Of a DNA stretch of 64,000 nt, positions 2,990 to 43,764 are shown piece after piece (position 1 is the stretch's first letter; every line of letters starts with the position of its first letter). This DNA comes from Octopus sinensis (taxonomy: Eukaryota), in NCBI RefSeq assembly GCF_006345805.1, contig NC_043005.1, positions 4,278,001-4,342,000 on the forward strand. The letters are read 5' to 3'. The notes beneath the pieces were generated by a model that searched no databases, was not told the origin of the DNA, and saw only the letters and a program-made list of their open reading frames with translations. The position numbers and the translations under genes were made by a program.

Positions 2990-3207
2990 GTAAGTATTTT
3001 TTTCTTTATTTACATCGTAAGACTTGAATCTCTGCAGCAAAATCTATTTTTCCCATTATATTTTGTTTCACAGCTTTCCTCCACCCAGTGTTGCCATCTC
3101 ACATATTATCGTTCTGTTATATTTTACTACTTTTCCTAAAAAGAAAATTGTCACATTAGTGTGGGTTTGCTAAGCCATCTTAGGGGAATCTCTTGTTAAT
3201 GTGAGTT

Positions 3208-3243
<36 letters not shown>

Positions 3244-5374
3244 TACTGTCACTTTCACTTATGTAACATGCTTATGTCATACTCAACAAATGACCCCAAC
3301 TTTAAACTGGAGCATTGGGTAACGAGCATTAATTATAATTATAGGTAGTGATTTAAATTCCTTGCACTATTTTCATTATATTATCCAGCAAGTTGTATTA
3401 CAGAAAACTCCTAACCATTATGTTCATTGAATGTTATTCCATTAATTCATGGGATGTACATTTGTAAATATAATGATGTGGATTAAGTATTTGAACATTC
3501 AAACTTGGGTGTGGTCAGTGTCTACACACAACCTATCTAACATTAACAGCCAGCAGAGAAGAAAATACAGCTATCAACCATACTATGTATGTATGCATGC
3601 TTACATACATACATGCACTCACTCAGCTCCTTGTTATCAGAATATACACAAGTGAGAGGGTCAGAATAGCAGCCAAATGAATCTTTCAAGTGAAGTCTCA
3701 AACAAATTTGTCGTTCAGGGATGTGCGTTGGTGCAATATGGCTGAATGGTTAAGAAGTTTGCATTGCAACCGTGAGGTCCCGAGTTCAGTTCTACTGCAT
3801 GGCATCTTGCACAAATATCATTTTCTGTAGCCTCAAGTTAACATTACATTGTGAATGACATTGGATAGATGGAAACTGTGCAGAAGCCCATCAGATGGGT
3901 TGCAGTAATCCTTTGGCTATTGCAGGTGTTATGATCCAAAACCCTCTGCGATAGGTGAAAATCTGCAAAGTAGAAACAGAACTGTACTGTATATTTTTTT
4001 TAATTATTTTTATAATTTGTCTATATTTATTTTATTATAAATGCAAAACAACACCACGGAGGAATCAAGGTAAGCTTAAATAATGAACTGCGACAGGTGA
4101 ACTGCAATATGGCAAGGGGTTATTGTATATCTTTAATTTAAAAGGTACAGCTATGTTAGACACACCCTGCACCAAACGGATTCTATCTGAGAATTACATG
4201 AAAGGTACAGGTCTGTGGAATACTCAGCCACTTGTGTTTTAATTTAGGGGCAGATAATTCAGTAGATCAAACAAGTGAATCCTCATTGTTGAGTGATGGA
4301 GAACCGTCACCCCTGTCACCATCACCACCCCATATATGGATGTGAATTTTTGTTCATTTCTTCCTTCCAAAGAGTCTCTGCTCATTCTTTCTTCTTCTCC
4401 GTCTTCCCCTCAGAGTTGTTCTTTTTGTTTTTTTGGAACATTTCTTCTGGAACTTTCTCGTGTTGTATTTTGTTATTTTGTTTTTTGTACTGTCTGACTT
4501 CATTAACTGTTAAATCACAGCAACAGATTTAGATATTGATGTTGAGCAGTTATTACTAGTGAAGCAGACATTTTAATGTCTGGGATACAGAAGATAAAAG
4601 AGGAGGAGGAAGAGGAGGAAGTTGGTGGTGGTGGAATAATGATGGGACTAATGAGAAGGTGGAGGGGAGGAGAGGGATATTATTATTATTGGGTTGTGAT
4701 GAGGATATAATATTAATCTACACTTTATTATTATTATTAATAAAAAAGAAAGGTGTGTTTGTGTATTTGGGAGTGTTACAGCTGTAAATGTGTACATAAG
4801 GATGGACACCTGTGTGTGTTTTGTTTTTAAGAATCTTCCTGATTCTCACAGCTAAATCATTTTGTCTGATGGGGGGAGGGGGGAATAAAATAGTTAGAAA
4901 TAGCATAAATAAGTACTATGCCTTTCTCTCTTATCCTTGCACTATTTTAAAATAAAATATTGTTAGTAAGTTAGTAAGCATTCACTTTACACTTACTTTT
5001 CAACCAGATGCTAAACATTATACTTTTTTTATTATGGTAGAGGAAGAAGGAAAAAAATAGACATAAATTTGTATGTGTTAAATGTGTATTTATATATATA
5101 TATATATATACACGAGCAAAACGCCCCCCCCCCATCCAATGGACAGCGCTAAGTTGTCAAACACTTAAACCAAATTTTCTCAAAACAACTTGTCCGACCG
5201 TCCCATAGGCCTCCCCTTTGAGAAACACTGATTTAACCTAAATTTGAGACACCAGCAAAAGAAGAAATAAAGATAGACTTTTTGTCTGTTCCAAATATAT
5301 ATATATATATATATATTTACCCACTGGAGGGGACACCAGACCATTGCAGGATTACTCAGATTTGCCATTTAAAT

Positions 5375-5830
5375 AGACTGGAGCAATGTGAAACGAAGTG
5401 TTTTGCTCAAGAACACAACACATCAAACCAGTCCAAGAATTGAAACCACAATCTTTTGATCATGAGTCTAACACCCCTAACCACTAAGCCACACACCTTC
5501 ACAATATATATATAGAAAGTGTGAAGGTGTGTGGCTCAGTGGTTCGGGTATTTGGTTCACAATCATAAGGTTGTGAGTTTGATTCCTGCTGGCATGTTGT
5601 GTCCCCGAGCAAAACATTGTTTCATTTTGCTTCAGTCCACTCAACTGGCAAAAATGAGTTCTACCTGCAAATTCAAAGAGTGTCGTGTTGCATCCTGTAA
5701 TGCTGAATCTCCCTGAGGTCTATCTTAAGAGTACAGATGTCTGTGGAATGCTCAACCACCAGCGTGATAATCTGGTTGACCAGATCAACAGAATTCTTGC
5801 CATTGTAACTGACAGTGTGCTCATGACAGA
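5375..5830. mobile_element. Head-to-head pair of tRNA-derived SINEs (family E)
   Basis: Minus copy ends ...ccactaagccacacaccttcac (5502); plus copy starts gtgaaggtgtgtggctcagtggtt (5521). Other copies lie at 45130-45370(+), 48540-48680(-) and 50770-50890(+). Confidence 0.75.
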
Positions 5831-7563
5831 ACTGGTTAATATTCTAAAATTATCTAAACTGAAGAAAGTACTCATAAATGGGGGTGGGGGTAATTCACAT
5901 CGAAACAGAAAAATGAGACAGAAATTGAGTCCGGTACAAATGATGTAACCATGTGGGTGTACAGAGTGACTTCTCGTGTATTTTAATTCTTTTGATACCA
6001 ACCCACCCATGACAGCCCTGGCTCTATGAAACAATTACTTGCTTTGAAGTAATACAAACCATTTAGAAACTGCCTTGTGGTTCTATCATTCATTCAGACT
6101 TTGTTTTAAAGTGATCTAAATTCCGTTGAAACTTTGTTAATTTTCATTCCAAACACCAGAAAAAAGAATGAATTATTTTACTAAATTCTAATTATTTTCA
6201 AAGTTAATTCAAACAATGGTAGAGTATTTCAACAGAAATATGATAATAAAAGGGTTAAGGGTTTCTATGAATGAAGATTTGGTAAGGGCAGTTTTGTTTC
6301 TAAGAACAAGTTGTTGATAAATATTAGTTTGGGTTGTTTGGTGTGACCCCCTTTTTTTGTATATACAGTTTCCTTAGTAAATTCTTTTACTCTGTATGTT
6401 TTAATTTCATTTAATGTAAATCTTTCATATTACATTTACTTAAATGTTATATTCAAGCAAACTGACTGAAATTGCTGCTGGTTCTTTGATACAAATTCCG
6501 GTTTTAAACTGATTTAAATTAAAACCTTCCATCAAAATTCCATTTTAATTTACATTGCAAACACCAGCTTAATAATGAGTTATTTTATTAAATTCTTCAT
6601 TAGTTCCAAATTAATTGAAACAAAGGTAGTGTTTCCCAGCAGAAATATGGTAACAAAAAGGTTAGATAAAAAAAAAAAATGTGGTGGTGGTAGTGGGGGT
6701 CCTAGATTTTGTAGATCCTTTTTGGTGTGCAGTAAGGAGTTAATTCCATTGGCTGTCCCCATGTATAAACAAATGTTAAGGAAAGATTAGGTTTGTTTAG
6801 TACAGTTGACATTTTCAGCTGACTACAGTTTGGAATGCATTCATTCTTAACCAGGCTGTTTCAGATCACAGAATTCCTCAAGAGGAAAGGGTTGGTGGCT
6901 TATTTTTAATGTAGAATGATTAGATGAGAATCCCAGCAGGGTCAACAGCAGATCTTGTAGGAGCAGCAGCTTGTTAATTTAGAATAGTCGGATATAGTGT
7001 TTTGTGTCTGTGAAGAGCTATTGCTGTAGCTGATGGAATAGAAGTGGTACATGTATAGCTGATCTGTAAACTGGGTACAAGCGAAGAGAGAGACTGCTAG
7101 ATTCATCCTCATCCTTTTAATGGCCACATTTCTATGCTTGTGTGGGTTAGATGGAATTCCTTGAGGCAGATTTCCCAATGCTATTCCTTGTCACCTGCCC
7201 TCACTTATTTCCAAGCAAGATAATATTTCTCATGGTCAGACATGTTCCTATGGAAGGCTGGAAATGAACGCCACTCATTTACAACTATTGTGTGATGCAA
7301 AGACGAAGAAATGTGCACTCACATGTGTGTGTGTGCACACGAGAACGAACACACACACACACACACACACCAGTTTCTCTCTGATTCTACCAAATCTACT
7401 TTGGTAGTTGGTTGGGGCTTTAGTAGAAGACACTTTGCCCAAGGTGCCACAGAGTGAGATTGAACCTGAAGCTGTGTGGTTGACAATCAAACTTCTTACC
7501 TCACAGAGCCACACCTGTACCTGTACTATTTAAGAATAATAAATTATTAGTGAATAATTTTTC

Positions 7564-7720
7564 ACAGGCATGGCTTGAGGTAAGAAGCTTGCTTCAAAAC
7601 CACATGGTCCTGGGTTCAGTCCTACTGCATGGCATGTTGGGCAAGTGTCTTCTACTATAGCCTCAGGCCAACCAAAGCCTTGTGAGTGGATTTGGTAGAT
7701 GGAAACTGAAAGAAGCCCGT

Positions 7721-7766
<46 letters not shown>

Positions 7767-7810
7767 CATACAACCATGCTAGCACAGAAAATGGATGTTA
7801 AACGATGATG

Positions 7811-7842
<32 letters not shown>

Positions 7843-8030
7843 TTGTCCCCACCACCATTGCTTGACAACCAATGCTGGTGTGTTTATGTCCCCGTAACAT
7901 AGCGGTTCAGCAAAAGAGACCGATAGAATAAGTACTAGGCTTATAAAGAATGAGTCCTCGGGTCGATTTGCTCAACTAAAGGCGGTGCTCCAGCATGGCC
8001 ACAGTCAAATGACTGAAACAAGTAAAAGAA
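7564..8030 (+). mobile_element. tRNA-derived SINE family A
   Basis: Same head, body and tail. Further copies lie at about 2165-2350(+), 3720-3890(+), 7290-7518(-), 21960-22150(-), 24145-24530(+), 27550-27690(-), 32300-32440(-) and 54950-55100(-). Confidence 0.8.
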
Positions 8031-8999
8031 TTACATGTTGTATCTTACGGTGATATAAGTTTGAAAAATGATTCCTGTGTAGCAACTTTCCAAAATGCTC
8101 TGCAAACTATTTTGAATCTAGGAAAGAGCCTTGGCAAGTTTTCCGTTGTAGCCATCAAGCTATTTCCAGTTACATATCTGTTATATTGTTTTATTGTCCC
8201 CCCCCCAAATGGAGGCCAGGTTCTTGTCTGTGGTAGAGTAATCCATGTTTGTGTGAGCATGTGTCTACAGACGCATAGATTAATATCGAATATTTTAGTA
8301 AACCAAGTTCAATGTGGAATGGTGTGTACAATGTAGGTAATGGAAACAGATTGGAATAAAAGAGAATTTTGGAATCATATAGCATATTGGATGACTTAGA
8401 AAGAATTGAGGAGGATGATGAGGAGGAGGGATGGGTTGTGGGGGGTGGGGGTGGCAGTGACAAAATGAAGAAAGAATTTATTTGGATCGTAGTAGTGCTC
8501 TGTAAGGCAGCGTAAAAATTTATCAAAGGAGGTAGACCTTGAAATGCTCAGAATTTCAGGGTCTGGAAGTATCCCTGGGGAGAGAATATTAGGGAGGGAT
8601 GTGGGGTGATTTTTGAAGCCCTTTCAAATCCCGGTGCCTGATTGAAGAAGCGTTAAACAGATGGTAGCAATGGAAATGGCGGTGGGATGTAGGTGAGCGT
8701 TGTGGCAACTGTAACATGAAAACAGAAAAGCTGAACTTCCATAAGATTGTTTGTTTCTACATGTTGTAGGGGGGGGGGCGATGGAAGAAAATCTTAGATC
8801 ACTTTCAACTTCTAAATATCAAGAACTGCTCTCTCTCTCTTTCTCCCTCTGTTTAAATACTCTCTCTCACACACACACACACATTGAGAGAAGGTGAAAT
8901 AACTGGTTTACCTGGCCAGAAGCCAAGCTACAAGTTAAACCAGAATGTATTGGGCTGTATGGATGGATGGACGTATGTATGTATGTTTGTATGTGCACA

Positions 9000-9040
<41 letters not shown>

Positions 9041-10465
9041 TGTCGTAGGAAGGTATCTGTATTGACAAATACACAGAAGTGTCATGAGAGTAGATTACCA
9101 AACAAAAAGTACCATGAGGACTAGGAGTTACTTAGAGAGTCGGCTGTAAAGTTTAGGGGGTAAATAATGGGCAAAACAGTTCAGGGTATGACAAAGTTGC
9201 AAGAACCTCTGCTAGAATCATTAAAATGGTAAAGTCCTTTTGACCACCGTTGAAGTGGTAGTACTGTTGGTTAAGTACCAGCTTTCATACTCGAGATGGT
9301 GCACTGAAAATAATTTTTAATTTATTAGAATTATAACTTTGATGAGAAGTTATGTTAATGAATATTATTCTCAGAGCATGCAAGGGAGAGAATTTCTGTA
9401 ATTTCAATCAGGTAAAATAGAAAAGGAAAAAATATGCAGAGTGGAGAGGTAGGAAAGTGAGCTTGATTTTTGTCACCAGTGGTGTCAATTCAGGTTATGT
9501 TTCAACCTTATTAAACCTCTTCAGTGAAGCATAATCCCCTCAGTGGCCTCCAAACTCATTGACTAATGTTCTACAAGAGCTCAACTGGCTGTTCTATATC
9601 TTATTGTCCAACTGAGAACAAGGAGGTAAAATGTTGATAAATGAATCCCAAGGATTGTCTACACCAAGTGTGAATGTGCTAAACTTGACTAGGAATTCTT
9701 TGCATGAAGATACTCACCTCATCACCACTAATTTCATCTCTTCCGGACTCCACCTCAATCAGCTTTATCTTCTCTTCCAAAATGTAACCAAGCAGCCCCT
9801 CTCTACAGCAACAAACCTGTTCTGCTCTGACCCCTTGTTTTCATACTTTAATCCTTCATCTCCTAGCATAAAGCTACCTCTGTTAGGTTTTATAGTCTTG
9901 TAAGCTGCATGGCGATCACACTAGTGCTGGTGACACGGAAAAGCCCCCAGTACATTCTGTAAAGTATTTGGCATTAGGAAGAGCATCCCGATGTGGAAAC
10001 CATGTCTGAGCAGACACCGGAGCATAATGCAGTCCTTGAACCCATAGGATCCAGTCAGACTTTCCAACTCATGCCAGCATGGAAAATGGATGCTAAATGA
10101 TGGTGATGATAATGCAGGTGTTCAACAAGGCTCAGTCCTTAGCTCCTCATCTTCATTGTAACCTTTGAAACCTTTATTAAGGACAAGGTATTTGTGACAC
10201 TGTTCTCATTACTGCTGGAATTTGAACTGAAAGACACGCAGTTACTCTAAGAAATATCCTTAACCCAATAGTCTCAAAACATAACAGTAATGTCCAAGTA
10301 AAAAGAAAAAGTTCAAGGAATTCTCAATGCAGATGTAGTTACTGGGTAGAATTAAAGCAGGTGTCTCAAGCATACTGATGAAGAATAAAAGACTGAATGT
10401 ACTAAATCCTCCTTTGATAACTAAAATCCTGATCAATCCAGTTCTGAAGTTGATAGACTGCTTGT

Positions 10466-10675
10466 TTAACCCTTTCATTACCACATTTCTGTTGAAAATT
10501 CACTGATTTTGTTTCAATAAATTTTGAAAATAATAAAGAATGTGGTAAAAACTATTGTTAGACTGATGTTTTGGAACATAAATTAAGATGAAATTTTGAT
10601 GGAAAATTTTAAAACAAGAAGTTTGTATCTTAGAACTAAGGGTGATCTTGGGTAGGTTGGTATCAAAAGGGTTAA
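10466..10675. mobile_element. piggyBac-type MITE
   Basis: TTAA|CCCTTT...AAAGGG|TTAA termini. Confidence 0.8.
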
Positions 10676-12075
10676 GTACTGTTAATTACATTTCATAATT
10701 ATCACAGCTACTGGTACTATTAATAGCAGTTCAGGGATGGATACGGAAGTTTAAAGATGTGCTTTCCCGGTTGGTTACTTAGGGATTCTTTCTCCAAATA
10801 TGTCATATTATGCCTCTTGTGTAAAATATATTATCCCGTAAGTCAGTGGAGTTTGGTAAATAAAGAGAATGGGCAACCGTAGAACAATTGGTTTTAATGA
10901 CAATAAACTTAAATTAGGTTATGGTATCATATCACCTGGTTAGACCTCATTTGTTGCAAAAACTGATTTGTTCAACAGAGTTGGTTCCACTGATATAGTT
11001 TGGTCATTCAGTTGGTTACATAAGCTGGGCTGAAGAAGTTAGTGTGTGTTGGTCATTAGTGAGCTCGTAAGGCCAAGGTTGGCCCATAGAACACTTTAAT
11101 AGTAGAAATGGTAGAAAGACAGTCTGGACTGTGATGGAACAAATAAAATGATGCTTTGTTGCAGATTTAGATATTTTTTATGGTTTTGTCAGATCTTCCA
11201 ACAGTGACAAATGTTGATATTAAGCTAATCCTCTCTTTTAACCTGATAGGAATCAAGATAATTTATATTTGAGAGTATTTCTAAGAATGTAAAATCTAAA
11301 CTCCAGACTTCACAGTTTCTCGTTTTCTTTTACATTTCCATTAATTCTTTTTCTTTGGTTTTGCATTTCTTCTTCAAATCTTTTTCTTCTTCACGCCGTT
11401 ATTTAATCCTCTTCTCTTTCGGTAAATGATACTAGCTACGCCTTATTCCCTCTTTCTCTCTCTCTATGAAAATCTTCCTCGTCTTTGTCACTTATTTATT
11501 TATAAACCTTTAACTTGGTGCAAGATTCCACCGTACTTTGATTAGTTTCCTTACCATTCCTATGTTGTTCTGCTGAAAACCAATATCTTGGAGTTGATGT
11601 GATGTGACGGGTAGTTAACGTCTAACTAATAACATCAACAACAAGTCTAGCATTTTTGTCTGTCTGTAAATTATCACCTCCTGCTTCTCTGTCTCTCTCT
11701 CCATCTCCATCTCTTTGTATGTATCACTCTACCTGTCTTTCTTTCAAGTTCTGTTTACTGCAAAAGAAAAAAAGTATATCACCTTCTTACACAACTTTCA
11801 TTGCGGATGAATTGCCAGTGGGGTCAGTAGCTGGTTGCTTGTTTGTTCCTCACCAAAATAGCCCATTCTATATTTTGTTTTCCCTCCACCTGTAGCACCA
11901 AAGTGTTGCAGGTAGTTGGTCGGGTTCTGTTCTACTACTCCTATCCAAAATTTCTTCAGACTTATATATCAACATGTTGACGTATTGTTATCTTTGAAAA
12001 GAAGTGTGTGTGAGAGAAGGGGAAAAAAAAAAAAAGAAAAGGCACTACATTGGAATTATACTTATTTATTAAAAT

Positions 12076-12135
12076 ATGGCTTTTTCAAAGGCAAAATCTT
12101 GCTTGGTTGCACAACTCCAGCTTCATGAGAAACAG
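12076..12135 (+). CDS. Candidate alternative first coding exon MAFSKAKSCLVAQLQLHEKQ
   Basis: aaaatATGG context with an in-frame TAA at -6, and a CAG|gtaggg phase-0 donor, at the end of a repeat-free island. Confidence 0.4.
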
Positions 12136-12166
12136 GTAGGGTTAATTTTTGCCTACATTACATATG

Positions 12167-12212
<46 letters not shown>

Positions 12213-13214
12213 GTTTACTGAAATGTATTTGTACTCACTATTAAAACCAGACATCTTTTACTACACAATGTTATTTAACTTGTTTTTAATCTTGTTGCGA
12301 AGAAACAATTTTCTGCGTATTTTATTTTCTCACCCTTTTAAGTATTTTAAGCATTATATATAAAAAAAAAAAAACTCTCACACATTTATAAAATGTCACA
12401 GTTTTAGGCTGTTCTTTTTTTTTTTTTTCCAGCTAATATATTTGACTTTTTATTAACCGTATTTTAAAAATTCTTTACATATGGAAGACCATTCTTATTT
12501 GAGGAATTCTCATTCTTTGATCTTTTACCTTTGTTCAAATTTATTTCTTCTAATATGAAAACTTAACTTAACCTTCTAAATGTAACTCTATTCTTCCAAC
12601 CCAACGCTATAAATCTGTGCAACTTTATTCAATGCATAATACGGCAGTAAAGTTTTTTGCAAACCATATATCTACAACTCGGTTTCAATTCCTGGCTGGA
12701 ACCCTTACGCCAAAGGGGGAGATCTGCCTTAGGCAATGCTTTTATGAGAGCCGTGCTTTTGGTGCTGTTGTATAGGCTTGTGGGCCTGGGGTGTGGGGTT
12801 GCAAACTTGTGGGTTACCCTGTGTGGTACACACTCTATCTACTTCAGTGCTTGTGCTGTTATCGCTTACAGCCCTGGGGAATAGCATGAAGGGTGACAGT
12901 TTGGCATCTTCCACACTTTGATGACCCAGACATGAAATAATTTCTTGTACAGGGTACAGTGCTACCCATTTTGTAAATGGGTGGGGACTGTCACCGACTG
13001 AATCAACGCTTTCCACCCATCACTGCCACCCACACCAGTAGGTACCTGGTGCTTGTTTTATCAATGCCAGACAAATGAAAGACAGTCAGCAAGCCTAGAT
13101 GCAGCCAGACATTCCTCTTGTCCTCTTTCTGTCACTTCAACCCACCTTTTGCTTAAATAAAGGACAGAATTCTCTGAAGATTGAGATTCAGGACTTTCTG
13201 TTTGGCTCTTGTGT

Positions 13215-13640
13215 TTGCTTGTGTATATGTGTGTGTGTTGTATGTGTGCATCTATGGAGATGTGTGTATATACATATATGTATGTATGTGTATGTATGTG
13301 TGCTTATATGATGTGTGTAGATGCATATATGTGTGTGTATATGCATATGTGTATGTATGCATGTGTGTGTATATATGTATGCATGTGTGTGTATATATGT
13401 ATGCATGTGTGTGTATATATGTATGCATGTGTGTGTATATATGTATGCATGTGTGTGTATGTATGCGTGCATGCATATATGATGTGTATGTATGCGTGCA
13501 TGTGTGTGTGTGTGCATGTATATATGTGTATATGCCTGCATGTCTTTGTAAATGTGTATATAGGTATGTATACATTTATCTGTATATGTAAATTCATTTT
13601 TGTGTGTATATGTATGTGTGTGTGTTCTCATAACATGCTC
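13215..13640. repeat. Compound (TG/TA/TGCA) micro/minisatellite
   Basis: Includes tandem 22-bp units atgtatgcatgtgtgtgtatat; it produces the spurious stacked ORFs at 13181-13667. Confidence 0.9.
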
Positions 13641-14863
13641 ACATACACCTATACATACATCAGATAGAAATATCCTCAGTGGTGATAAGACTTTTCTGTA
13701 ATGAACTTGTAACTTGGTGGTTTGTACAATTATATTTGATACTACTTGAATGTTTCAGCAGCAATAATAATAATAATAATAATGGCTTCAGATTTTGGCA
13801 CTAGGCCAAGGAATCAAGTAAATGACATCAGTGTCAGTACTTGTACTTTACTTCAACTCCAAAAAGATAAAAGGCAAAGTCAGCTACAGTGGAATTTGAA
13901 CTCGCACTAATAATTCTGCCAGCCTGCCATTTTAACAATAATGATCTTTTCTACTATAAGCAGAAGGCCAGAAATTTTGGAAGGGGACAAGTCAGTTACA
14001 TTGACTCCAGTACTTGAATGATCTTCATTTTATCGACCCCAGAAAAATAGAAGGCAAAGCTGACTTCAGTGGAATTTGAACTCAGAATGTAATGAGCCAG
14101 AAGATATGCTACTATCCATTTTGTCTGATGCACTGATAATCCTGTCGGATTGCTGCCTTAATATTAATTCTTTGTACTACAGGCACAAGGTCTGAAAACT
14201 TGGGAGAGGGAGCTAGTCAATTATATTGACCCCCAGTGTCTAACTGGTACTTATTTTATTGAGCCAGGGAGGAAGAACAGTGAAGTTGACTTCGATGGAA
14301 TTTGAACCCAGAACATAAACAGCTTGAAGAAATGCCACTAAACATTTTGTCTGATGTGCTAACAATTCTGCCAACTCACCATCTTAGTAGTATTACTACT
14401 ACTACTGCTACCACTAATAGTAATAATAATAAAGCAAAACCAAACAGACTAAATGAAGTCTTAGTGTGTGTGTGTGTGTGTGACTTACACCTCTGTTGAT
14501 GGGTGTAATTTCTGTTTTTATATGCTGCACCCCACCCGTTCCGCTAATCTGGTTGATTACAACATTGGCTGGAATTACTAGAGATTATGTTTTAATACAT
14601 CATCATCTTCAGTGCAGGAGGATGGTTGAAGAATGGAACCGTTGAGTTGGTATCGTGTTTCACTCTTGAAGTGGTATCTTTTTACCAGAACACAGAACAT
14701 GATATGGCTGCTGAGAGAGAGAGAGTGTGTGTGTGTGTGCGCGCACGCGCGTGCGTCTGTGTGTGTGTCTCTGTGTGTGCGTGTGTGTGTATCTAAGTTT
14801 ACTTTCTCTGTGTCATGGTGTACACTATCAGTTCACTAGATTTTGGTGTAACAGAAAAATAAC

Positions 14864-14865
<2 letters not shown>

Positions 14866-14934
<69 letters not shown>
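14866..14934. repeat. (CT)n microsatellite
   Basis: Pure dinucleotide run. Confidence 0.95.
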
Positions 14935-14939
<5 letters not shown>

Positions 14940-15980: not shown

Positions 15981-18900
15981 TATTTACTCACACACAATGT
16001 TATTTCACATACCGTTTGAATTTATACCATGGCCTTAACTTGATGTCAGCAATAGAAGGTGGATATCTGAATATCACCGATATCCATTGGTCACAATGTG
16101 AAAGGTAGACAGGTACACATTGTCAGGTAGGCAGACTGAACCAATACAAAATCTTTGTTTTTAGAAAAAAGTTGCTTATTGTGCCAGATGGTGACTGTAC
16201 ATTGGTGTTATGCTAATGACACTCAAATGTCTGTGCTTTGTGAAATTGCTGTTGTCGAGCCCCAAGTCTTCTTTCTCTTCAAGTTTTCTAAACATGTCGA
16301 ATGTTAGCTGAATGACTAAGCTCAGCCTTTAGAGCTGTTGTTTACATTTTTAACTGGTATGAGAAAACTTGGCTGCCAAACAAGCCGGGCAAGCCGTGAC
16401 TGTTGTCTTCTTTGCTAAATTGTCATGTTGTTAATTAACCTCAGTTCTCTTTGATGTAGCAAACCTATAACAGCAATTAAGCATGAAATGGTTAGAAGTC
16501 ACACACATTTCAGACATTCTGCATCTGTTGTTGTCTTGCAGTCTTATTTGGCATCACTCTATACTGTGTGTCTTTCGGTAAAATCTTTAGCTGTGGCTCT
16601 CTTTTGGTATATAATATTTTCTACTTTGGGGACAAGGCCTGAAATTTGGTGGTGGGGGTTGAGTCAATTACCTCAACCCCAGTACTCAACTGGTACTTAT
16701 TTTATCGACCCTGAAAGGATGAAAGGTAAAGTAGACCTTGGTGGAATTTGAACTCAGAACATTGTGACAGGCAGAATACTGCGAAGCACTTCGTCCAGCA
16801 TGCTAACGATTCTGCCAACTTTCCGCTTTAGCAGTTTCAAAGAAGGGGGTAAGTTGATTACATTTACCCCAGTACGCAACTGGTACTTATTTTACTGATG
16901 CTCAAAAGGGATGAAAGGCAAAGTTGATCTTGGTAGAATTTGAACTCAGAACCTCAAATTGGGAGAAATTCCAAAAGCATTCCGCCTGGCGTGCTAACGA
17001 TTCTGCCAGTTCACCACTTGAATGATAATAATAATCCTTTCTCTTCTAGGCAGAAGGCTTGAAATTTTGGGGGCAGGGCTAGTCAATTACATTACTCTCA
17101 GTGCTCAACTGGTACTAGATTTATTGACCCCTGAAAGGGTGAAGGGCAAAGTTGACCTTGATGAAATTTGAACTCAAAACATAAGAACGGATGAAATGCC
17201 ACTTCGCCTTTTGCCTGCATTACACAGCAGTGGTGGAGTGTATTTTTGTGTTAGACACCAATAGTGTTGTGTGTGTAATATGCCTGTCCCATTACATCTA
17301 TGTATTTATTCAATGCAAAAACCATCATGTTGAGCCGATTAACTGCAGCATTTGTTTGGAGATAAATGTCTCCTCTGGATGTTCCGTGTTAATGATGACA
17401 TGGACATTCTCTCCAGACAAAACACCTCAGTTAATTTGCCCTCTCGTGATGTGTTGTCATTAACTATGACGCAAATGGCTATCTTAATTCAAAACTAATT
17501 ATCTTTCAGCCAACAGATTTTTATACGATACTTATTACGCTTGTGGCTGAGCTAGCAATGATGTATGTTGTATATATATTGAATTACACAATAGTTATAT
17601 AGCTTGTCTGCGTGTGTGCGTACATGTGTGTGTATATTGTCTTAGGAAAGGGTTGCGTGTTATATAGGAGTTGTGCTCTTGTGTGCAAGTGTTGTATAAC
17701 ACAGATTATTTTTATGTCGTTAAGGCAGAGCCATGATGAACTTTGTGAACAGCCGTAACATTTTTATGTGAGAATTATGTTGATTGATTCTGAAAACCAT
17801 CCTCTCCCAACAAATCGATTCTGTTGCTTACAATATTTTCATCAGATGATTCTACTCCAGACATAATTCCTCCCTCCAGGATCAATAAAATAGTACCAGT
17901 TATATACTCGGGTTGATATTAACACCCCCCTCCTCCTAAAATTGCTGGCATTGTGCCAAAGTAGAACGAATGACTTCTTCCTTTATTCTCTCACTTGACT
18001 TTCTACAAATGTTTTATTTCAAGTATCTTGGGTGTACTTCACGTGTTCTGTGCTTTCATTTAATCGTTAGCAACTGAGGTGATGATGATGATGGTGAGGA
18101 GGAGGAGGAGGCAGAGGAGGCAATTGTTGTCTACATCTGTTTGTTTGCTATTATCTATTATTATTATTAATTTCTTTTTCTATGCTGCTTTCGGGGATGG
18201 GGGCTAATTCATTTCTTTTTTTTTTTTTTCCATGTGTATATTATGTAAGTTGGATTATAATATATTGAGGGAATTCTGTACAGAATGTGTGTTATCTGGG
18301 CTGCTGTATTTTCGGTGGGTGAGGTGGGGGGGGGGGGTAGGTTAGCTATGTAGCAAACCTTGGGACATCATCATCATCATTATTACTTTTATTATTATTA
18401 TTATTATTATTGAGGCAGTGAGCTGGCAGAATCGTTAGCATGCCGGGCAAAATACATAGCAGCATTTCGTCCATTGTTACGTTCTGAGTTCAAATTCCAC
18501 CGTGGTCGATTTTGCCTTTCATCCTTTCAGGTTCGATAAAATAAGTACCAGTTACATACTGGAGTTGTTGTAATTGACTGTCTCCCTCTCCCCCAAAATT
18601 CAGGCCTTGTGCCTACAGTAGAAAGGATTATTATTATTGTTATAGTATAGATGTTCTTGTTTATTTCTCTTTTGAGCAATACCCAGTGTACCAGCTATGA
18701 TGAGTGTTGTCTCACTGTTATCCCCCATGTGAGAGAGGTTTATTTCAATCCCTACATGTGTGTGTGTGTGTGTGTGTATTTGAATCATCCAAGAGTTGTC
18801 TACAAAGAAGAAAAAGACAGTCCACCTTGTCCAGCATCAATAACTGATGCCAGGCCAATGTCTTGTTGTTTAGCCCCGTGTCAGCTCTTGCTGAAGAAAC

Positions 18901-25876: not shown

Positions 25877-25915
<39 letters not shown>

Positions 25916-26560
25916 GGTGGCGAGCTGGCAGAGTGATTAGCACCCTGGGTGAAATGCTTAGCGGTATTTCGTCTGTCTCTATGTTCTGAGTTCAAATTCT
26001 GCTGAGATTGACTTTGCCTTTCATCCTTTTGGGGTTGATAAATTAAGTACCAGTCAAGTACTGGGGTCGATCTAATCGACTGGTCCCCTCCTCCAAAAAT
26101 TTCAGGCCTTACGCCTAAAGTAGAAAAGATTATTATTATTGTCGTTATTATTAAGGGTCAGCTGGCAGAACCATTAGCATGTGAGACAAAATACTCAGGG
26201 GCACGTCTTCTGCCTCTTCACTTTCTGTGTTCAGATCCCACCTAGGTTTACTTTGCCTGTCGTCCTTTTAGGGTCAATAAGTATATCCCCTCCCCCCAAA
26301 TTTCAGGCCTTGTGCCTATCGTAGAAAGAATTCCACCGTTAAGGTAGCAAACTGGCAGAATTGTTAGCATGTTGGGCAGAATACTTAGCATTTCCTCCAG
26401 TTCTTTATGCCCTGAGCTCAAATCCCATTGTAGTCAGCTCTTTCATCCTTTCAGGGTTGATAAAATAAAGGACCATTAAAGTACTGGAGTTGATGTAATC
26501 AACTCTCCTCCACCCCGACCCCAAATTTACTGGCCATGTGCCAAAATTTGAAACCCTTCT
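25665..26560 (+). repeat. Head-to-tail array of four family B SINEs
   Basis: Heads near 25667, 25915, 26155 and 26340, separated by (ATT)n tails. Confidence 0.8.
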
Positions 26561-27264
26561 TTTTCTACTTATTTATTATTATTGAAGGTTTATACACAGG
26601 GTGGATGTTGTTCATAATATTGTAGTACTAATAGTAGTAGCAGTAGTTTGAGAGAAAGAGAGAGGTTGTGTGTGTGTGTCTGCATGCAGTATGTTGATTT
26701 TAAGGGTTACAGTGGTACCATCGTATCTTCATCACGGAATGATTTAACCTGATATCCTTGTGATGAAATCTGGAACAAGCTGGATAATAAACAGCAGCAA
26801 AGATGCTGATGTAAAGTAAAGAAAGCATCTGTTTTTACTTGTCAAAGACAGGACTTGATGGGTGGCATGAACGTTTAGATTACCCTGATCACTCCCACCT
26901 ATTTTATTTTGTTTTACGTTGTTGCCGATCAGTTTGGAACAACTAAAGGCTTTTAAGGCAACAAGCTTTTCTACAGGACTAACAACAGAGGAGCTGTTAA
27001 GAAAACCTGACAGCAAAACAGCTTTTTTGATGGACCAAGACAATACCAGAACAGCTTTAAACTGAATTCGTCGTCTGATTTATTGATGGTGGCTGAAGAA
27101 TGGATTTATTTTATTTATCAGTTGTTTAAGACTTTCTCAGGGGAAGAAGTCCAGGGCCTCCGAGACTTGTGGAATGAAGTGGGAAAGGTATTGTTAAACC
27201 AGAGACCTGATTGTTTTGTGATTCTACTCAAGGCACCCGACAGCCTGATGGTATTCTTAAAACT

Positions 27265-27495
27265 GGGCGAGCTGGCAGAAACGTTAGCACGCCGAGCAAA
27301 ATGCGTAGCTGTATTTCATCTGCTGTTACGTTCTGAGTTCAAATTCCTCTGAGGTCGACTTTGCCTTTCATCCTTTCAGGGTCGATAAATTAAGTACCAG
27401 TTACGAATGGGGTTGATGTAATCGACTTAATCCGTTTGTCTGCCCTTGTTTGTCCTCTCTGTTTAGCCCCTTGTGGGTAGTAAAGAAATAGGTAT
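27265..27495 (+). mobile_element. tRNA-derived SINE family B (representative, little-diverged copy)
   Basis: ggcgagctggcagaaacgttagc...ttctgagttcaaattcc...gactttgcctttcatcctttcagggtcgataaattaagtaccag; dozens of copies occur in both orientations. Confidence 0.85.
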
Positions 27496-28149
27496 TCTTA
27501 AAACTGGGTAATACATTAAGTGTACTAGTCAAAGAATGGCAATGTTCTTTCTTGTAGAATTCAATGCAGTTTCCACTTACCAAATTTCTTCCCAAGACAT
27601 GTGTCAGTGTGTGACTTTGGTCCTGTGTAATGAGATTGAACCTCAAATCACAGAGTTGCTAAGTAAATTTCTTAACCACACAACCATGCATCTATGTCTG
27701 ACCATTTGTCCGTCCATCCATCCATCCGTCTGTCTGTCTATCATTCATTCAAGCTATCATGTGGTGTATCCATGTATCATCTTTCTAACTACTTGCCTAC
27801 ACACATGCACATACATTGCCATGTCTGAAAAATGGAGAAATTTGATTTATATTCTGAGGGTGGTGCAGTGATTTAGGTTCTGTCTGCTATATCACATAAA
27901 GGGGTGGGATATTAGGAAGATATCACTGATCTTAACCATTTGTTATTGTATTTCTGTTTAAATACACTGCTTTTATTTCAGTTAATTTACAAAATAATGA
28001 AGAATTAGCTTCATCATTATCAAACTGGCGTTTGGAACATGAAATTTTGATGGAAGGTTTTCATGTAAATCTCTTTGAAACTAGGCATTTATCTCATAGA
28101 AGTGGTGGGTGGGGTGGCATGTTAGGCAGGTTGGTATCAAAAGAGTTAA

Positions 28150-32449: not shown

Positions 32450-33600
32450 AGGGGAAGGATTAAGTCTGTGTCATCAACTCCATTTCTTAATTGGTGATTA
32501 TTTTATTGACCCTGAAAGGTTGTATGGTAAAGTTCACCTCAGCAGGTTTGAACCTGGAATGCAAAGCCAGAAGAAATGCTGTTAGACATTTTGTCAGGTT
32601 TCAAATTTTGCCACAAGGTCAGCCATTTTGGGGAAGGGGATAAGTCGATTATATCAACCCCAATGTTTCACTGGTGCTTAATTTATTGGCCCCAAAAAGG
32701 TGAAAGGCAAAGTTGACCTCGGCAGAATTTGAACTCAAAATGTGAAGACAGACAAAATACCGCTAAGCATTTCACCTGGTGTGCTAACGATTCTACCAGC
32801 TCGCCACCTTTATGATTTCGAATTTTGCCACAAGGCAAAATAATGGGATGATCAGGTTATAGGTTTGTTCATTATAGGTTTGTTCAGCAAGAGCTGACAC
32901 GGGGCTAAACAACAAGACATTGGCCTGGCATCAGTTATTGATGCTGGGCAAGGTGGACTTTCTTTCTCTTCTTTGTAGACAACTCTTGGATGATTCACAG
33001 CAATCTGGAGAAAGGGGACGAGTTGATTACATCGACCCCTCCCCTCCCCCTCACGTATTCAACTGATACTTGATTTATCAACTTGAGCAGAATTTGAACT
33101 CATAACGTAGTGGCAGATGAAATACTGCTAAGCATTTTGTCCAGCACGCTAACTATTCTGCCAGTCTGCTGCCATAATAATAATAATAATAATAATAATG
33201 TTTTTTTTATTTAGGCCCAAAGCCGATGATTTTGAAAGTAGAGTGTAGTAGACAAATCCATTAACCCCAGTACTTGAATTTATTTTATCAGCCCCTGGGA
33301 GATGAAAGTTGACCTTGGCAAGATTTGAACTTGGAAAGTAGAAAATAATTTTTCCTGGTACGCTAACATTTCTGCTAGCTCAACTCTAATAATAATAATA
33401 GTAATAATCATAATAATAATTTAAAATTTTGACCCAAGGGCAGCAATTTTGAGAGAGGGTGGTAGGGGGCAAGTCAAATACATCACCCTTAGTGCTTAAC
33501 TGCTGCAATTAAGTACCAAAAGAATGAAAGACAAAATCAACCCTGGTGACATTTGAATGTAAAAAGTGAGAAGAAATACTACTAAACATTTTGTCCGATG
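32450..33600 (-). repeat. Head-to-tail array of about 5-6 family B SINEs (minus strand)
   Basis: Repeated aaaggcaaagttgacc...gaatttgaactc units separated by (AAT)n. Similar minus arrays lie at 13790-14385 and 16620-17220. Confidence 0.75.
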
Positions 33601-35038
33601 GGTTAAAGATTCTGCCTGTTTACAACCTAATATTGACAATAATAATAATAGTGATAATAATATATTAAGTAATCATTGTGATCAATTTGGTATGGCGTCA
33701 GTTTTTTGGCTGGGAAGTTTAGTGTTCTCTGTTCTATCCTTCAGTCAGAGCTGTATCTCGCAACCAACTTTAGCTGTCAACAATGCAAGTAAGACTGGTA
33801 GGAAAATAATTTGGTTGCAGGGTACCAAAATAATTGGCAATTATCGTTGTCCAGTTTATAGCTTTGTATTGTCCAGTTCAGATCTTTTTTTCCTTTTCAT
33901 TACATGTGAACAAATGATCAAGTGAATGAGTGAATGAATGAATGAGGGAATGAGTGAATGAATGAATGGAGAAGGAATGTATTTTTTTTCTTTTTTTTTT
34001 TTTTTTGCTTCCTGAAACAGAAATGAAAATTTTAATTAGAATATGATGATAATTATCAATCAGTATATCAGCATGGATGTTTTCATTGTCGAGTTGGTTG
34101 TTGTGCAATAAGTCAAAACTTCAGGAAATTTCGCACCGGCCACTTTAATTGAGCCTGTTGAGTTGTGTTTATTACACGAGTGGTGAGTAGCTGTAACAAC
34201 GAATGTGTAAGCCACCCCTTATAGGTAGGCGGCCACAAATAACCAGATAGCTGCATCACTGCCATATTGATTAAGCTATTGACGTTAAATGTCTCTCTTC
34301 TTTCTTCTTTCACTCTCTCTCTCTCTCTTTGTCTCTCTATCTCTGTCTCTGTTAATCTCCGGTGAATAGATTTCTGGTGATTGCATGAAGAGAGAAAAAC
34401 AAATATATCAACTACGTAATACAATGTTAAGATCTACCCAGTGTAGACTAATATAGACTAATATATAGATATTCATATATTTATATTTATTTTACAACAG
34501 CCGGTCTGCTCGGCTATTACACACATCTATGAATCTACTGTTTCTTTGTCAATCTTTCTTTCTTTCTTTCCTATAGCTTCTAGAAATATCTATAATCTTC
34601 AAGTGAAACTGAATCTTCAATATTTATTTTAGAATTTCTGAAATATTTATTGTTTCTTCCTTTTCTTTAACTGTCTTGAAAATGAAAACAAAACTGTCCT
34701 TTACAAGTGATTTTTAAAATATTATTGGAAAAAACCAATCGCTGTTCTATAATAGTGATTGACTGGTAATGTTATGTATTTTCTCTCCGTTATCGCCAAT
34801 GTTTAACATCAGTTTCTTCCACAAAATATTTTTCCATGTCTGTTGAATATCGACATTTCCAAAACCTGTCAGTTATGCATTTTTTCCTAGTTGAATATTT
34901 ATTTATATATTTGAAACACATATGGGATAAGAAAATGTATTTTGGTTAATTTGCATAACACATGCAATTTTATTTTTTAAAATCTTCTTTTAATCAATCA
35001 ATTTAAAACAAAATAAAACAAAAAACAAACAATAACAA

Positions 35039-35368
35039 ATGTCCAGATCATCTTTCTGGAAAGTCCTTAGACAAGCTCGGTCTCTTAGTCCAAGACCAAT
35101 CTCCAAAGCTGCTTCTAAAACTGAAGAAACTAAAGAATCTGATTCTGATAACACTACTAATTATATTCCGATATGGAGATCCAACCATTTGGACCAATGT
35201 CACCTCTTGCCTTCTTCACAAACACTGGGACCTTTACACCATTGTGATGAGTGTGGATCTCTTAGTTATTGTGATCATAAAATGTGCCAAATTAGTCCGA
35301 CAATAAAAGTCAACCCCTGGAAGACTTTACAGCCATATGTTACCTTTAAAAGTTGCTGCCAGAGTTTG
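35039..35368 (+). CDS. Candidate alternative first coding exon (110 aa) for a CH1-less spectraplakin isoform
   Basis: A/C-rich leader ...aacaataacaaATG with an in-frame TAA at -6. The 110 codons are non-repetitive and end TTG|gtaaga, a phase-0 donor matching the acceptor at 40381. Inr-like TCAGTT occurs at 34809 and 34869. Confidence 0.65.
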
Positions 35369-37439
35369 GTAAGAAAATAATTTCATTCTGTTCTATTATT
35401 ATCATTCTGTCTCTTTCCCCTCCCCACTTTCTCTCTCCCCCACTCTGTCTGTCTGTGACTGTTTGTTTGTGTCTGTCTGTCTGTGTCTGTCTGTCTCTCT
35501 CTCTCTCTGTATTCCAATATTATGTCGCAGCAACTGGCTCCCCCCCACCCCATCAAATGCTGCTCTACCCTAGACCTCCTCTACTTCACCAGTTCTATTT
35601 TCACTACAACATCAACCCCCTCCTACCCCCTCTCCTGTCTCCCCCCCCCTGCATCTTTCCAGTCTCTTACCACCTACACTCCTTACATCCTTCATCCTAA
35701 TCACTGTTTAATCCTTCTTCCCTATGGCTTCATCCATCTGTTGGCAACACAACCTCCCCATACCTTAACTTAATCGAACATTGACAACACATAACCCTAG
35801 CTAGCCATAGATGTTCTGAGTTCAAACTTCACCAAGGGGGACTCTACATTTCATTCTCCCAGGTTGCAGTGGTGTTGGGGGGGTGAAATCTAACAATAGC
35901 ATTAACAATTAACATGCTCTAGTAATTGCCATGGAAAAAGCAAAATGACCCTTACCCCCACCAGCTGCTGTGGCTGTAACCTTGTGCTGCCACCTTGTGG
36001 GGTTTAGGGTATTCCGTTCAATACCCAGTGGTGTATTCTTTCCTTGAGCAAGATACTTTCTTCCACGTTGCTCCAGTTCACTCAGCTGGCAAAAATACAT
36101 TGTAGCTGTAATTCGAAAGGATCTGTGTCATGCTGAATCTCCTTGAGAACTACGTTAAGGGTCCACGGGGCTGTGGAATGTTCGGCCATTTGCATGTTAA
36201 TTTCACAAGCAGGCTGTTCCGCTGAATGGATCAGCTGGAACACTAGTCTCGTAGTCACTGACAGTGCCAGTTTTTTTATAACCTTGTATGTCTGTTATTA
36301 AATCCTTATTTACTTTCACCTGAGCAGTTAGCCAGCCTTGGTGGAATTTTGTTTCGCTTTCTCTTTCTCTGCCCCACCCCCTCTCATTCTCAACTTACAT
36401 TGATTAAACACAAACGCTCACATTATTGGGCCATCACAAAAAAAAAGAAGGAAAGAAAATCCCCAGCTGTCTGAGCCAGCTGGTAACATGTGCATATTTG
36501 TGTGTGTGTGTGTGTGTGTGTCGTCGTCATTTAATCATGATTATCGTTTTCCATGTTGGCATGGGTTGGATGGTTCAGCAGGGACTGGCAAATCAAAAGG
36601 CTTCACCTTAGCTGTGTTTGTATTTATGCATATCTGTGCTTGTGTATGTGTCCCAGATCAAATGTAGCCGCAGTTCATATTTCATCATCATCATCATTTG
36701 ATGTCTGTTTTCCATGGTAGCATGGGTTGGACAGTTTGACTGGTGTCTGGGAAGCCAGGAGGCTGCACCAGGCTCCAGTCTGATCTGGCAGTGTTTCTAC
36801 AGCTGGATGCCCTTCCTAACGCCAACTACTCCAAGAGTGTAGTGGGTGCTTTTTATGTGCCAACGGCACAGGGGCCAAAGAGGGCTGGCAACGACCTTGA
36901 TCGTCAAGGCGGCGCTGGCATTGCCCACGTTCGGATGGTGCTTTTTATGTCCCACCGGTATATAACATCTAACATCATGACTGCCACTTTAGGCAAGAAA
37001 AGGCATAAACATCACTACTTCCCCTGTGTACCCCTGCACATCTCAGTTTCAAAATAACTTTAGTTTTTGCCATTGTCACATTACATTTAAGAGGATTACT
37101 ACATTACTGTGAGGGGGTGGGGTGAGGGGCTTGTGTTTTATTATTTATTTTATTATTTTACTTTATTTTTTTTTCAATTGTTATATTTGAGGATGGTCAT
37201 ATTTTGCCAATTAAACACACACACACACACACACACTACATTTAGCCGTTATTATTATTATTATTATTATCATTATTATATCAAAGCTCTTTCTTTGTGC
37301 GTCCTGTGACATCTTCTGTGCCTCCTCTTGTTCTTATTCCGTTCTCAACCCACAATTTCACACCAATTGCGAAACAAATACATATTTTTTGTTTGTTTGT
37401 TCCTCTAAGCATGAAACTTAAAAGTTCTCATGAAGTTGA

Positions 37440-37845
37440 GTGATGGGGGGGGGGGGTAAATAGTTCACCAGCATTTAACAGCAATGCCAGGAAAGAGAAG
37501 CCAGCACCACCACCATCATTGTTGTCATTGCAATTGCCTTTGTCTTCATCCTTTACAACCACTTCCACAAGCATCATAAGCATTTCATCATCGTCCTTTG
37601 TGATCGCCAGCACCACCACCACCACCACCACATTCTCCATCATTAACAGAACCATCGTTGCCATTTCATCCTCATTATCATCAGCATCACTGGTAGAAAC
37701 ATCATTATCATTTCATCACTAAACATTACCACCACCACCACCGTAGTTATCATTCCCAGCATCAGCACTATCAGAAATGTCCTGACCATTTCACCCCCCC
37801 CATCACCACCACATCACCACCACCATCATCATCATCATCATATTT
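37440..37845. repeat. Degenerate (ATC/ACC)n low-complexity tract
   Basis: cat/cac trinucleotide-rich sequence. Confidence 0.8.
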
Positions 37846-38132
37846 TTCTCATTCTCAGATGCGTTTGATAAAATAAGAGGAAAATTATCAAACATGTTTT
37901 AAGTTAATTTCAACCACTTTTTTTTTTGGGTGGGAAGCAAGATTTTATTTTTAACCTTTTCTTTCTTTTTTCTTTCAACTACTTTTGATTTATCTTACGT
38001 GACATTAGAGTTCAGGTTTAAAGTTCGGTGTTTCTTGTTTGTAATTTTTATATATTTTTTTAAAATCTGGTGTCCTGTTGGAGGAGTTCCAAATTAGAAC
38101 TAATATATATATACATACACTATGTATACACA

Positions 38133-38190
<58 letters not shown>

Positions 38191-40380
38191 CTACACACAC
38201 AATCACACATTGTTCACTGAGCTTTATATATATACACACAATCACACATATATTGTTTATTGAGCTTTATATATATAAATAAGGTATTAGATGATGTAAG
38301 CCATTTAGTATAAGGTCATGAGAAAGAGACAGCGTAAAGCATTCCAGGATCGATGAAATAAAGTACCAGCCAAATACTGGAAAGGGTGTTGTTTATGTTA
38401 TCAACTTGACACCTCCCCCTCAAATTGAGGACCTTTCTGCCTAAATTCAACACAGTTTTCATCTGGTGATGGGTGTTGGTGGTTGGTCGCATTTGTTTTT
38501 TGCTTTATTTTTAAAGGTTTTCCATTTATATTTTTGCCTCCTGTTCTACATAAAAACTACGATTAACTATATCACGTTCGTTAGTCCAAGGCCTTAAGTT
38601 AATCTTGTAATTTTAGAAATAAGAAGATGAGTTGATTTTTATAAAGGTTAATGAATACGAGATGTCTGAGTAAATGATGTAGATGGTTTTGGTTTGCATA
38701 ACAACCGTCTGTCTGTGTATTGAGACATACATTTAGGCTGACGTACTATCGTAGTCTGCTTTCTTTGTGCTGTTGATAACACAAGGGATTGGATTGTAAA
38801 TAAAGGAACGGAATTGAAAGACTAACATGTAGTTTGCTAGCATTAAAGTTTTAAGTTTCAAATCTTGCCACACTTGAATTGACCTTTAATACATTTGGGT
38901 ATAATAAAGAAGTTACTTTAGTAGCATATTCAGACTTTTGTTACCATATTTCTGTTATTAATTCACTTTGTTTCAGTTAATTTTGAAAGTAACAGAGAAT
39001 GGAATAAAATAATTTTCCATTATTAAGCTGGTGAAGCACGACGTTTGAACATTGGTCCTCACTGAGGTGATGACAGGTGACCCCTTGGGAGAAATGCTGT
39101 GCTTGAGAAGACCTAGCAAGCCAAGTGAGACCATAACTGTGGCCTATGCTAGTGCAGCATAACCAACCCATTTAAGAGTACTCTTCAATCATTGGGCAAT
39201 AAACTGCACTTGCAAAAACCTCTTGAGGCAAGTGAAGTCATCATTGTGGTCAATGACAGTACCGCATGATTGGCACCCATGCCAGTGGCACGTGGAAAGC
39301 ACCATTCAAGCATGGTTGATGCTAGTATTGCCTGACTGGTCCTGTGCTGGTGGCACGTAAAAAGCATCATTCAAGCATGATTGTTGCCAGTGCCGCCTGA
39401 CTGGCTCTTGTGCCGGTGGCACTTAAAAAGCTGAATTTACCAATTACAAACCAACAAAATTCTCTGTAGTGCTTTTTACTGATGTGAATTTTCTACCACT
39501 GACGGTACCTACACCGAGTAAAGCAGACCTGATTTAAGTTCCTTGTCTATGGCACCATTTCTCAACAATGGAAACTTTACAATTGTTTAAATCAGTTGAC
39601 GAATCTAGAGAATATTAATAAATGATTAAATAAGATCTTCATGAACCGAGGAGGTGAGGTGGGGGGGGGGGTAATAAATTTGATAATATTTTTTTTTTCT
39701 TTTTTTACTAACCACCAGCATGTTTAGATGTTTTATTACAAAGAGTTTTTATTACTGGTCAGTTTGACCAGAGTGATTGCAACTTCACAAGAATCTTTGT
39801 TGCAATGCCAGTATAACTTCCTTGTAATTTCACACACACACAATCATACCCATGCGTGCACCATGTTACTTTAGGCTTGTGGGTCAAGTGCTTAATAAGT
39901 TTTATAAGTTTTAAATTATGAAATCAAATCTGGTTGTGACTTACTTTACTTTTTATCACTCTGTTATAATTAAAATAATTATTAATTTTCTAGAGCCATT
40001 TCATTTTACTGGACTTTTCAAGTTTACAGAAGCTAGCCTTCTGTCACTGAATAATAATTTGTTAATATTTCTTTCGTCACCAGAACTTGTTAAATCCAAC
40101 ATTAATGAACATTACAGCAACTTTTCTGTTCTCTATAAAGTCTAAGCCTTGTTTTTACAAGTCGGTATTTCCCTTATTCTGGCCTTTGTCCCCTCTTCTA
40201 TTTCATAAAGGAAGCTAATTAATCCAATATAAAAATGTTATGTTTGCAGAAGGGATAGAGTAACATTGCTGTTTTCCTTCAAACAGTAGAGAGACTTTAA
40301 AATGGCAAAGACAGAGAATTGCTTTATTATTTTACATCAATGAAATATTCTCAATATTTTTTTCTTTTTCTTTTCTCTAG

Positions 40381-43761: not shown

Positions 43762-43764
<3 letters not shown>

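Follow-up and report, generated by a model that had tools for sequence, protein, structure and literature searches.

The long CH1/CH2 intron of an octopus plakin gene probably holds one alternative first coding exon and one internal cassette exon

Introduction

Does the very long intron between the CH1 and CH2 coding regions of an octopus plakin gene contain a series of alternative first exons? The locus lies within a 64,000-nucleotide (nt) stretch of the Octopus sinensis genome (assembly GCF_006345805.1, contig NC_043005.1, positions 4,278,001 to 4,342,000), hereafter called the window and used for all coordinates below. Its plus strand carries the 5' part of a plectin/MACF1-like plakin gene, probably a spectraplakin. 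All spectraplakins have isoforms that retain only CH2 and arise from alternative start sites or promoters, namely the C-type of Shot and type 3 of MACF1 and dystonin (bioRxiv 10.1101/122010; PMC3352950), and the CH2-only isoforms of BPAG1 and MACF1 bind F-actin more weakly (PMC3352950). An original prediction, made from the DNA alone, had proposed that the octopus intron is a cassette of alternative promoters and first exons, with up to four ATG-to-GT units that would all splice in frame onto the ISDVVV sequence at the start of CH2. Our analysis makes it likely that the intron holds just one alternative first coding exon (35039..35368), together with one internal cassette exon (12091..12135). 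The remainder is ordinary intronic DNA with microsatellites and repeats resembling short interspersed nuclear elements (SINEs). The exons on which the argument turns are as follows.

2897..2989, plus strand: last CH1 exon, located by tblastn with Octopus bimaculoides isoforms; aligns to the plectin/MACF1 actin-binding domain
12091..12135, plus strand: in-frame cassette exon of 45 nt, encoding AKSCLVAQLQLHEKQ; an identical 15-residue insert occurs in O. bimaculoides isoforms
35039..35368, plus strand: coding part of the probable alternative first exon, a 110-codon leader (MSRSSFWKVLRQARSLSPRP...CCQSL); based on RefSeq isoform X10 and conservation
40381..40547, plus strand: first CH2 exon (ISDVVV...IIHRH + AG); its acceptor is common to the donors of exons ending at 2989, 12135 and 35368

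Results and discussion

The intron and its ATG-to-GT units

The last CH1 exon (IKLVNIR...ILHFQ) ends at 2989 in phase 0, with the donor CAA/GTAAGT at 2990 (slashes mark splice boundaries), and a strong acceptor (tctctag) precedes the first CH2 exon at 40381, where the junction is again in phase 0. Both edges of the proposed intron (2990..40380) are thus confirmed. Its reported excess length also holds, since at 37,391 nt it is by far the longest intron mapped in the window, compared with 2.3 kb for 40548..42841 and 1.1 kb for 42958..44023. The gene continues through two further exons of this region.

42842..42957, plus strand: second CH2 exon (R-PDLVDYRQVRR...KLLDAE), mapped with O. bimaculoides isoforms
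44024..44131, plus strand: third CH2/linker exon (...SSLYDVFP), from which the gene runs on into the plakin domain

The assembled sequence of the CH1 end and CH2 contained a Pfam CH domain, and its best matches among solved structures (PDB) were the actin-binding domains of plectin (2.7e-66) and MACF1 (6.5e-63). Joined exons from 44586 to approximately 51960 matched Pfam Spectrin_4 (9e-13) and Spectrin, and the plakin-domain exon series extends past 56,500. The order found, tandem CH1-CH2 with plakin-domain spectrin-like repeats directly downstream, fits a probable spectraplakin, although a gene of the plectin type is also conceivable; the long spectrin-repeat rod, C-terminal EF-hands and GAR (Gas2-related) microtubule-binding domain of a spectraplakin would lie beyond the window.

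The positions originally listed as donors (12076, 27086, 33783 and 35039) proved to be those of the ATG codons, and the matching donors lie at 12136, 27188, 33789 and 35369; the four units (20, 34, 2 and 110 codons for units 1 to 4, respectively) are nevertheless all open from ATG to GT and in phase 0, as had been claimed. Donor scores were 6.4, −0.4, 2.9 and 2.6 for units 1 to 4, with 4.6 for the genuine CH1 donor. The intron contains 1423 phase-0 combinations of an ATG with any GT, and 44 of these have a donor score at least as high as that of unit 4, where 24 ± 7 were expected from first-order Markov simulations. The count of four units therefore has no statistical weight and, in a long AT-rich intron such as this, phase-0 units of this kind are mostly due to chance. 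Only the length of unit 4 is unusual (the probability that the longest unit reaches at least 110 codons was approximately 0.015 in the simulations). Since a second long open reading frame (ORF) with an ATG, of 111 codons, is present at 27536 in the same intron, the letters by themselves cannot decide whether unit 4 is an exon.

A conserved first coding exon at 35039

We used the unit 4 peptide fused to the CH2 exon as a query and then listed the cluster members of the match. The O. bimaculoides protein XP_052827051.1 (LOC106880762 isoform X10, named ‘uncharacterized protein’) reads MSRSSFWKVLKQARSL... and contains the CCQSL-ISDVVV junction as predicted; in-frame splicing of the unit at 35039 onto ISDVVV is therefore matched by the same junction in a RefSeq isoform. 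The donor is TTG/GTAAGA at 35369, in phase 0, and the leader of the sister species is 96% identical to that in the window (five substitutions and a two-residue indel). A second octopus was represented by a 2-kb genomic Logan contig (L001, run SRR11869391), which we aligned to 33393..35495. Within the exon we counted 14 substitutions in 324 positions (4.3%), compared with 166 in 1515 upstream and 13 in 117 downstream (10–11%), a rate 2.5 times below that of the flanks. The sole indel in the exon comprises 6 nt and is in frame, whereas the flanks are rich in indels.

To this could be added a more distant comparison. When all 1.84 billion representative proteins were scanned by HMMER with the leader as query, the octopus copy was joined by one other credible relative, P0026 (E = 2.5e-12). 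Genomic contigs of 1.8 kb in four read sets carry it. Among these sets is ERR12945500, a short-read set from the cuttlefish Acanthosepion esculentum (bioRxiv 10.1101/2025.04.22.649952). The cuttlefish ORF has 111 codons, retains the Met start (MSKFSFWKFLRRARSLSPRP), shows 45% amino-acid identity to the octopus leader and ends in ...RSL/GTAAGAA, the same donor in the same phase 0. When the cuttlefish contig was compared with the window, nothing beyond the first 68 nt of the exon could be aligned except microsatellites and low-complexity repeats. Within the exon, P0026 and another cuttlefish variant, P0028, are distinguished by two residues; a frameshift separates them immediately past the donor. 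One alignment (A2) was set aside, having wrongly placed the cuttlefish tails onto CH2.

The ATG is preceded at a distance of two codons by an in-frame TAA in the window and in contigs L001 and L002, that is, in all three lineages, so that in this frame unit 4 is only possible as a first coding exon. Its ATG is located between the last CH1 exon and the first CH2 exon, and the splice, as annotated in the sister species, joins phase 0 to phase 0, which is the arrangement expected of a CH2-only isoform. Taken together, the RefSeq junction, the conservation, the retained boundaries and the upstream stop strongly favour a translated and spliced exon over a chance ORF, as judged from sequence comparison. 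Several observations weigh against this interpretation. The X10 junction comes from an automated RefSeq model in the sister species, and no transcript-derived protein with the CCQSL-ISDVVV junction was found in the Logan, ENA or JGI collections. For the two octopuses, the ratio of non-synonymous to synonymous substitution rates (dN/dS) is 0.64; with just 10 non-synonymous changes and 4 synonymous ones, it says little by itself about selection on the protein, and part of the conservation may be at the nucleotide level. Moreover, the leader contains no Pfam domain, its AlphaFold2 model is of low confidence (mean predicted local distance difference test score, 46.5, from a four-sequence alignment), and an acceptor-like site upstream could allow the exon to be entered by splicing.

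The region upstream of the leader

The part of the intron covered by L001 contains two further features of interest upstream of unit 4.

33735..33891, plus strand: highly conserved non-coding block holding unit 3, from comparison with L001
34577..35038, plus strand: stretch preceding the leader ATG, in which several blocks are conserved; presumed 5' untranslated region and/or promoter

The block at 33735..33891 differs from L001 at 3 of 157 nt against the background of 10–11%, and no other part of the region spanned by that contig is as strongly conserved. Unit 3, which lies within it, encodes Met-Gln only (ATG at 33783, then CAA, with the donor CAA/GTAAGA at 33789) and occurs in none of the ten RefSeq isoforms. 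In the plus-strand fold of 33725..33890 (z = −2.2, compared with −0.3 for the minus strand) an 8-bp stem, GCAACCAA/UUGGUUGC, surrounds the unit 3 ATG and donor. A whole-window Rfam scan assigned the block to no family and the fold contains no microRNA-like hairpin; an identity as non-coding RNA was accordingly dropped. The block is not repeated in the window. It could serve the CH2-only transcript as a promoter, an enhancer or a 5' non-coding exon. In the last case, a non-coding first exon might end at 33788 and be spliced to an exon at 34577..35368. It is also conceivable that unit 3 itself is joined to CH2, giving an MQ-ISDVVV isoform.

If unit 4 is a first exon, transcription would most likely start at a point 5' of 35039 within the intron, and 33735..33891 may contribute a non-coding exon; translation would begin at the unit's own ATG, and the phase-0 splice would join the 110-residue leader to the first CH2 exon. 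If Shot-C, MACF1a3 and BPAG1a3 are a guide, the product without CH1 should bind F-actin weakly and be directed by its leader; an internal promoter is suggested on the same grounds. Alternatively, exon 4 could lack a promoter and be an internal exon entered from upstream, for example via 34577, acting either as a poison or regulatory exon or as a source of the leader by downstream initiation. The strong acceptor-like site at 34577, which is kept in L001, would suit such an exon, as would a comparable site approximately 105 nt 5' of the ATG in the cuttlefish contig. However, an ORF of approximately 110 codons beginning with Met has been preserved with respect to start, length and phase since the octopus and cuttlefish lineages split. 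This argues that the leader is translated, most easily from a 5'-proximal ATG. In addition, internal promoters are used in the fly and vertebrate precedents (bioRxiv 10.1101/122010). We therefore regard entry from upstream as unlikely, although it is the strongest competitor to a first exon with its own start.

A second alternative is that the 113-amino-acid ORF represents a nested small gene, or a non-coding element that is conserved and open by coincidence, with the X10 junction being an artefact of prediction. In its favour, dN/dS is not clearly below 1, nearby non-coding blocks are conserved more strongly still, and the peptide has no domain and a poor predicted fold. On the other hand, conservation ends exactly at the phase-0 GTAAGAA donor in both octopuses and in the cuttlefish, past which the read-through tails vary in length and sequence (VRK*, VRKII, VRTKKKLF...), and the peptides remain 45% identical although the DNA on either side defies alignment. 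These observations leave the nested-gene explanation with very little probability.

The leader peptide

Returning to the leader of the proposed first exon, we compared the octopus and cuttlefish sequences. The N-terminus is invariant (MSxxSFWKxLRxARSLSPRP), covering almost all of the first 20 residues, and an invariant motif of the form H-x-C-x2-C-G-S...C...C follows (H67, C69, C72, G73, S74, C78 and C83). The His/Cys motif may be metal-binding or palmitoylated and RARSLSPRP may serve as a phosphorylation site. The leader begins with MSRSS in octopus and MSKFS in cuttlefish rather than with the Met-Gly of a myristoylation motif. No confident relative was identified outside the cephalopods among the 1.84 billion representative proteins. 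A 622-amino-acid protein with tandem repeats, P0027, was rejected: its E-value of 1e-10 arises only from summing eight weak repeats, units of about 70 residues that faintly resemble leader residues 59–106 (VNP...P..TF.SC; 31–35% identity per repeat), and the conserved cysteines are unmatched, so that the similarity was judged probably spurious.

A 45-nt cassette exon at the CH1/CH2 junction

The donor of unit 1 has the best score of the four and is real, as originally supposed, but the exon that it serves is internal and not a first exon. The cassette is bounded by the acceptor ttttcaaag/G and the donor CAG/GTAGGG, the acceptor being situated 15 nt past the ATG at 12076. Six O. bimaculoides RefSeq isoforms (X1, X2, X3, X5, X6 and X7), in which the exon is used together with CH1, carry ...ILHFQ-AKSCLVAQLQLHEKQ-ISDVVV, the 15 residues corresponding to 12091..12135. 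Unit 1 was consequently rejected as a first exon. In transcripts that keep CH1, inclusion of the cassette would add 15 residues at the junction between CH1 and CH2 and would probably tune the opening and closing of the actin-binding domain.

Units without support as first exons

Unit 2 is listed here for completeness.

27086..27187, plus strand: unit 2, 34 codons, donor AAG/GTATTG; no support

It was rejected as a first exon on account of its poor donor, the lack of a matching protein and its absence from the ten RefSeq isoforms, and is probably a chance ORF. It is single copy in the window, and a SINE-like repeat begins 80 nt downstream. A search with the concatenated ORFs of units 1–3 against a collection of 5.8 billion proteins returned nothing at E <= 0.01. 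None of these three units is the 5'-most coding exon in any annotated isoform; their absence is judged from RefSeq annotation, which is no proof of absence. Of the proposed cassette of first exons, unit 4 thus stands, whereas units 1–3 lack support in that role. It is hardly credible that all four units, and possibly others, truly serve as alternative first exons with their own promoters, for although all are open and in phase 0, and unit 3 falls inside the most conserved block of the 2 kb with comparative data, about 24 such units would be expected by chance where 44 are present, the donor of unit 1 belongs to an internal exon, unit 2 has neither a good donor nor a homologue, and just one of the ten O. 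bimaculoides RefSeq isoforms starts inside the intron.

Comparison with known spectraplakin and plectin isoforms

The isoform predicted from exon 4 resembles the Shot C-type, MACF1a3 and BPAG1a3/n3 in lacking CH1, retaining CH2 and having a leader of its own from an alternative start. In O. bimaculoides, the CH1-containing isoforms begin with either of two alternative first exons (MDLGIDFQ... and MDTPGYMD...), so that the octopus CH2-only form stands beside two CH1+CH2 N-termini, as in the 1/2/3 (A/B/C) scheme of Shot, MACF1 and dystonin. As to the suggestion that this lineage has its own set of N-terminal variants, the leader is cephalopod-specific, but the type of isoform follows the general C-type/type 3 design. 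The three-way N-terminal design would thereby extend to a lophotrochozoan, supporting an ancestral bilaterian origin or, otherwise, striking convergence. The leaders themselves differ: that of BPAG1a3 has an N-terminal myristoylation motif (PMC3352950), in place of which the octopus leader has the invariant His/Cys and RARSLSPRP motifs.

The cassette exon has a counterpart in plectin, where exons 2alpha and 3alpha are optional, in frame, encode 5 and 12 residues and alter binding by the actin-binding domain (PMC7891324). The octopus exon is likewise short, optional and in frame within the actin-binding domain; in contrast to 2alpha and 3alpha, its insert lies exactly at the CH1/CH2 exon junction (LHFQ/ISD), and there is no evident sequence similarity. 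Plectin exons 2alpha and 3alpha are located within CH1.

It is tempting to combine these elements, with the leader as an undescribed cephalopod targeting module, the block at 33735..33891 as its promoter or 5' exon, and the linker cassette as an independent tuner of actin binding. The leader could then be a small element that binds zinc or is palmitoylated, its N-terminus being regulated by phosphorylation. If so, it would give the CH2-only isoform of a giant protein a cephalopod-specific localization; we put this forward tentatively, and think it more doubtful than not. A peptide common to octopus and cuttlefish has at any rate now been identified, and its targeting function is open to test. 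Already known are the isoform type and, as an unnamed automated RefSeq model within a truncated gene model, the octopus junction; a literature search yielded no publication on spectraplakin isoforms in cephalopods. The new elements are modest and comprise the leader shared from octopus to cuttlefish, the linker cassette at the CH1/CH2 junction and the ultra-conserved block.

Gene models in O. bimaculoides

Isoforms X1–X10 of LOC106880762 show the same exons and junctions as the window, the CH and cassette exons being 100% identical at the protein level. The nine isoforms other than X10 are named ‘plectin’. All ten end by read-through of the donor at 42958 (GKFLFSLKYLF...; window 42958..43043) and their products reach at most 295 amino acids, with a separate gene encoding 11,201 amino acids located 3 kb downstream. 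In the window itself, 42957 is spliced normally to 44024 and the plakin-domain exons follow. LOC106880762 thus looks like the truncated 5' part of one giant gene that has been split in two and misnamed ‘plectin’. Upstream of the window, optional micro-exons encoding WSQLTSNNMQ and HWRFSQ occur in CH1 after ...KWVNKHLLK (O. bimaculoides P0018, P0020, P0022 and P0025); the latter presumably lies where the five-residue insert of plectin exon 2alpha is found.

Repeats and other intron content

DNA that is repeated within the window accounts for approximately 29% of its length, and for 31% of the intron compared with 27% elsewhere; the difference is not unusual, and repeats were rejected as the cause of the intron's length. 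A SINE-like repeat of approximately 135 nt is present in more than 20 copies in the window (72–88% identity), among others those listed here.

16690..16820, minus strand: SINE-like copy
18420..18551: SINE-like copy
25919..26053: SINE-like copy
27266..27400: SINE-like copy
32671..32805, minus strand: SINE-like copy
41703..41776: SINE-like copy
58558..58690: SINE-like copy

ARAGORN detected no tRNA in the window and no tRNA-like head on this repeat. Pfam searches with nine other long ORFs of the intron gave no domains, and there was thus no sign of a nested gene or transposase. Long TG/CA- and TA-rich microsatellites (13100..13670, 7530..7900, 38070..38280 and elsewhere) produce many spurious ORFs of 70–150 amino acids on both strands. 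Between the first two CH2 exons, an ORF fragment at 42159..42341 on the plus strand matched Pfam Pif1_2B_dom (E = 1.4e-5) and is probably a remnant of a Helitron/Pif1 helicase.

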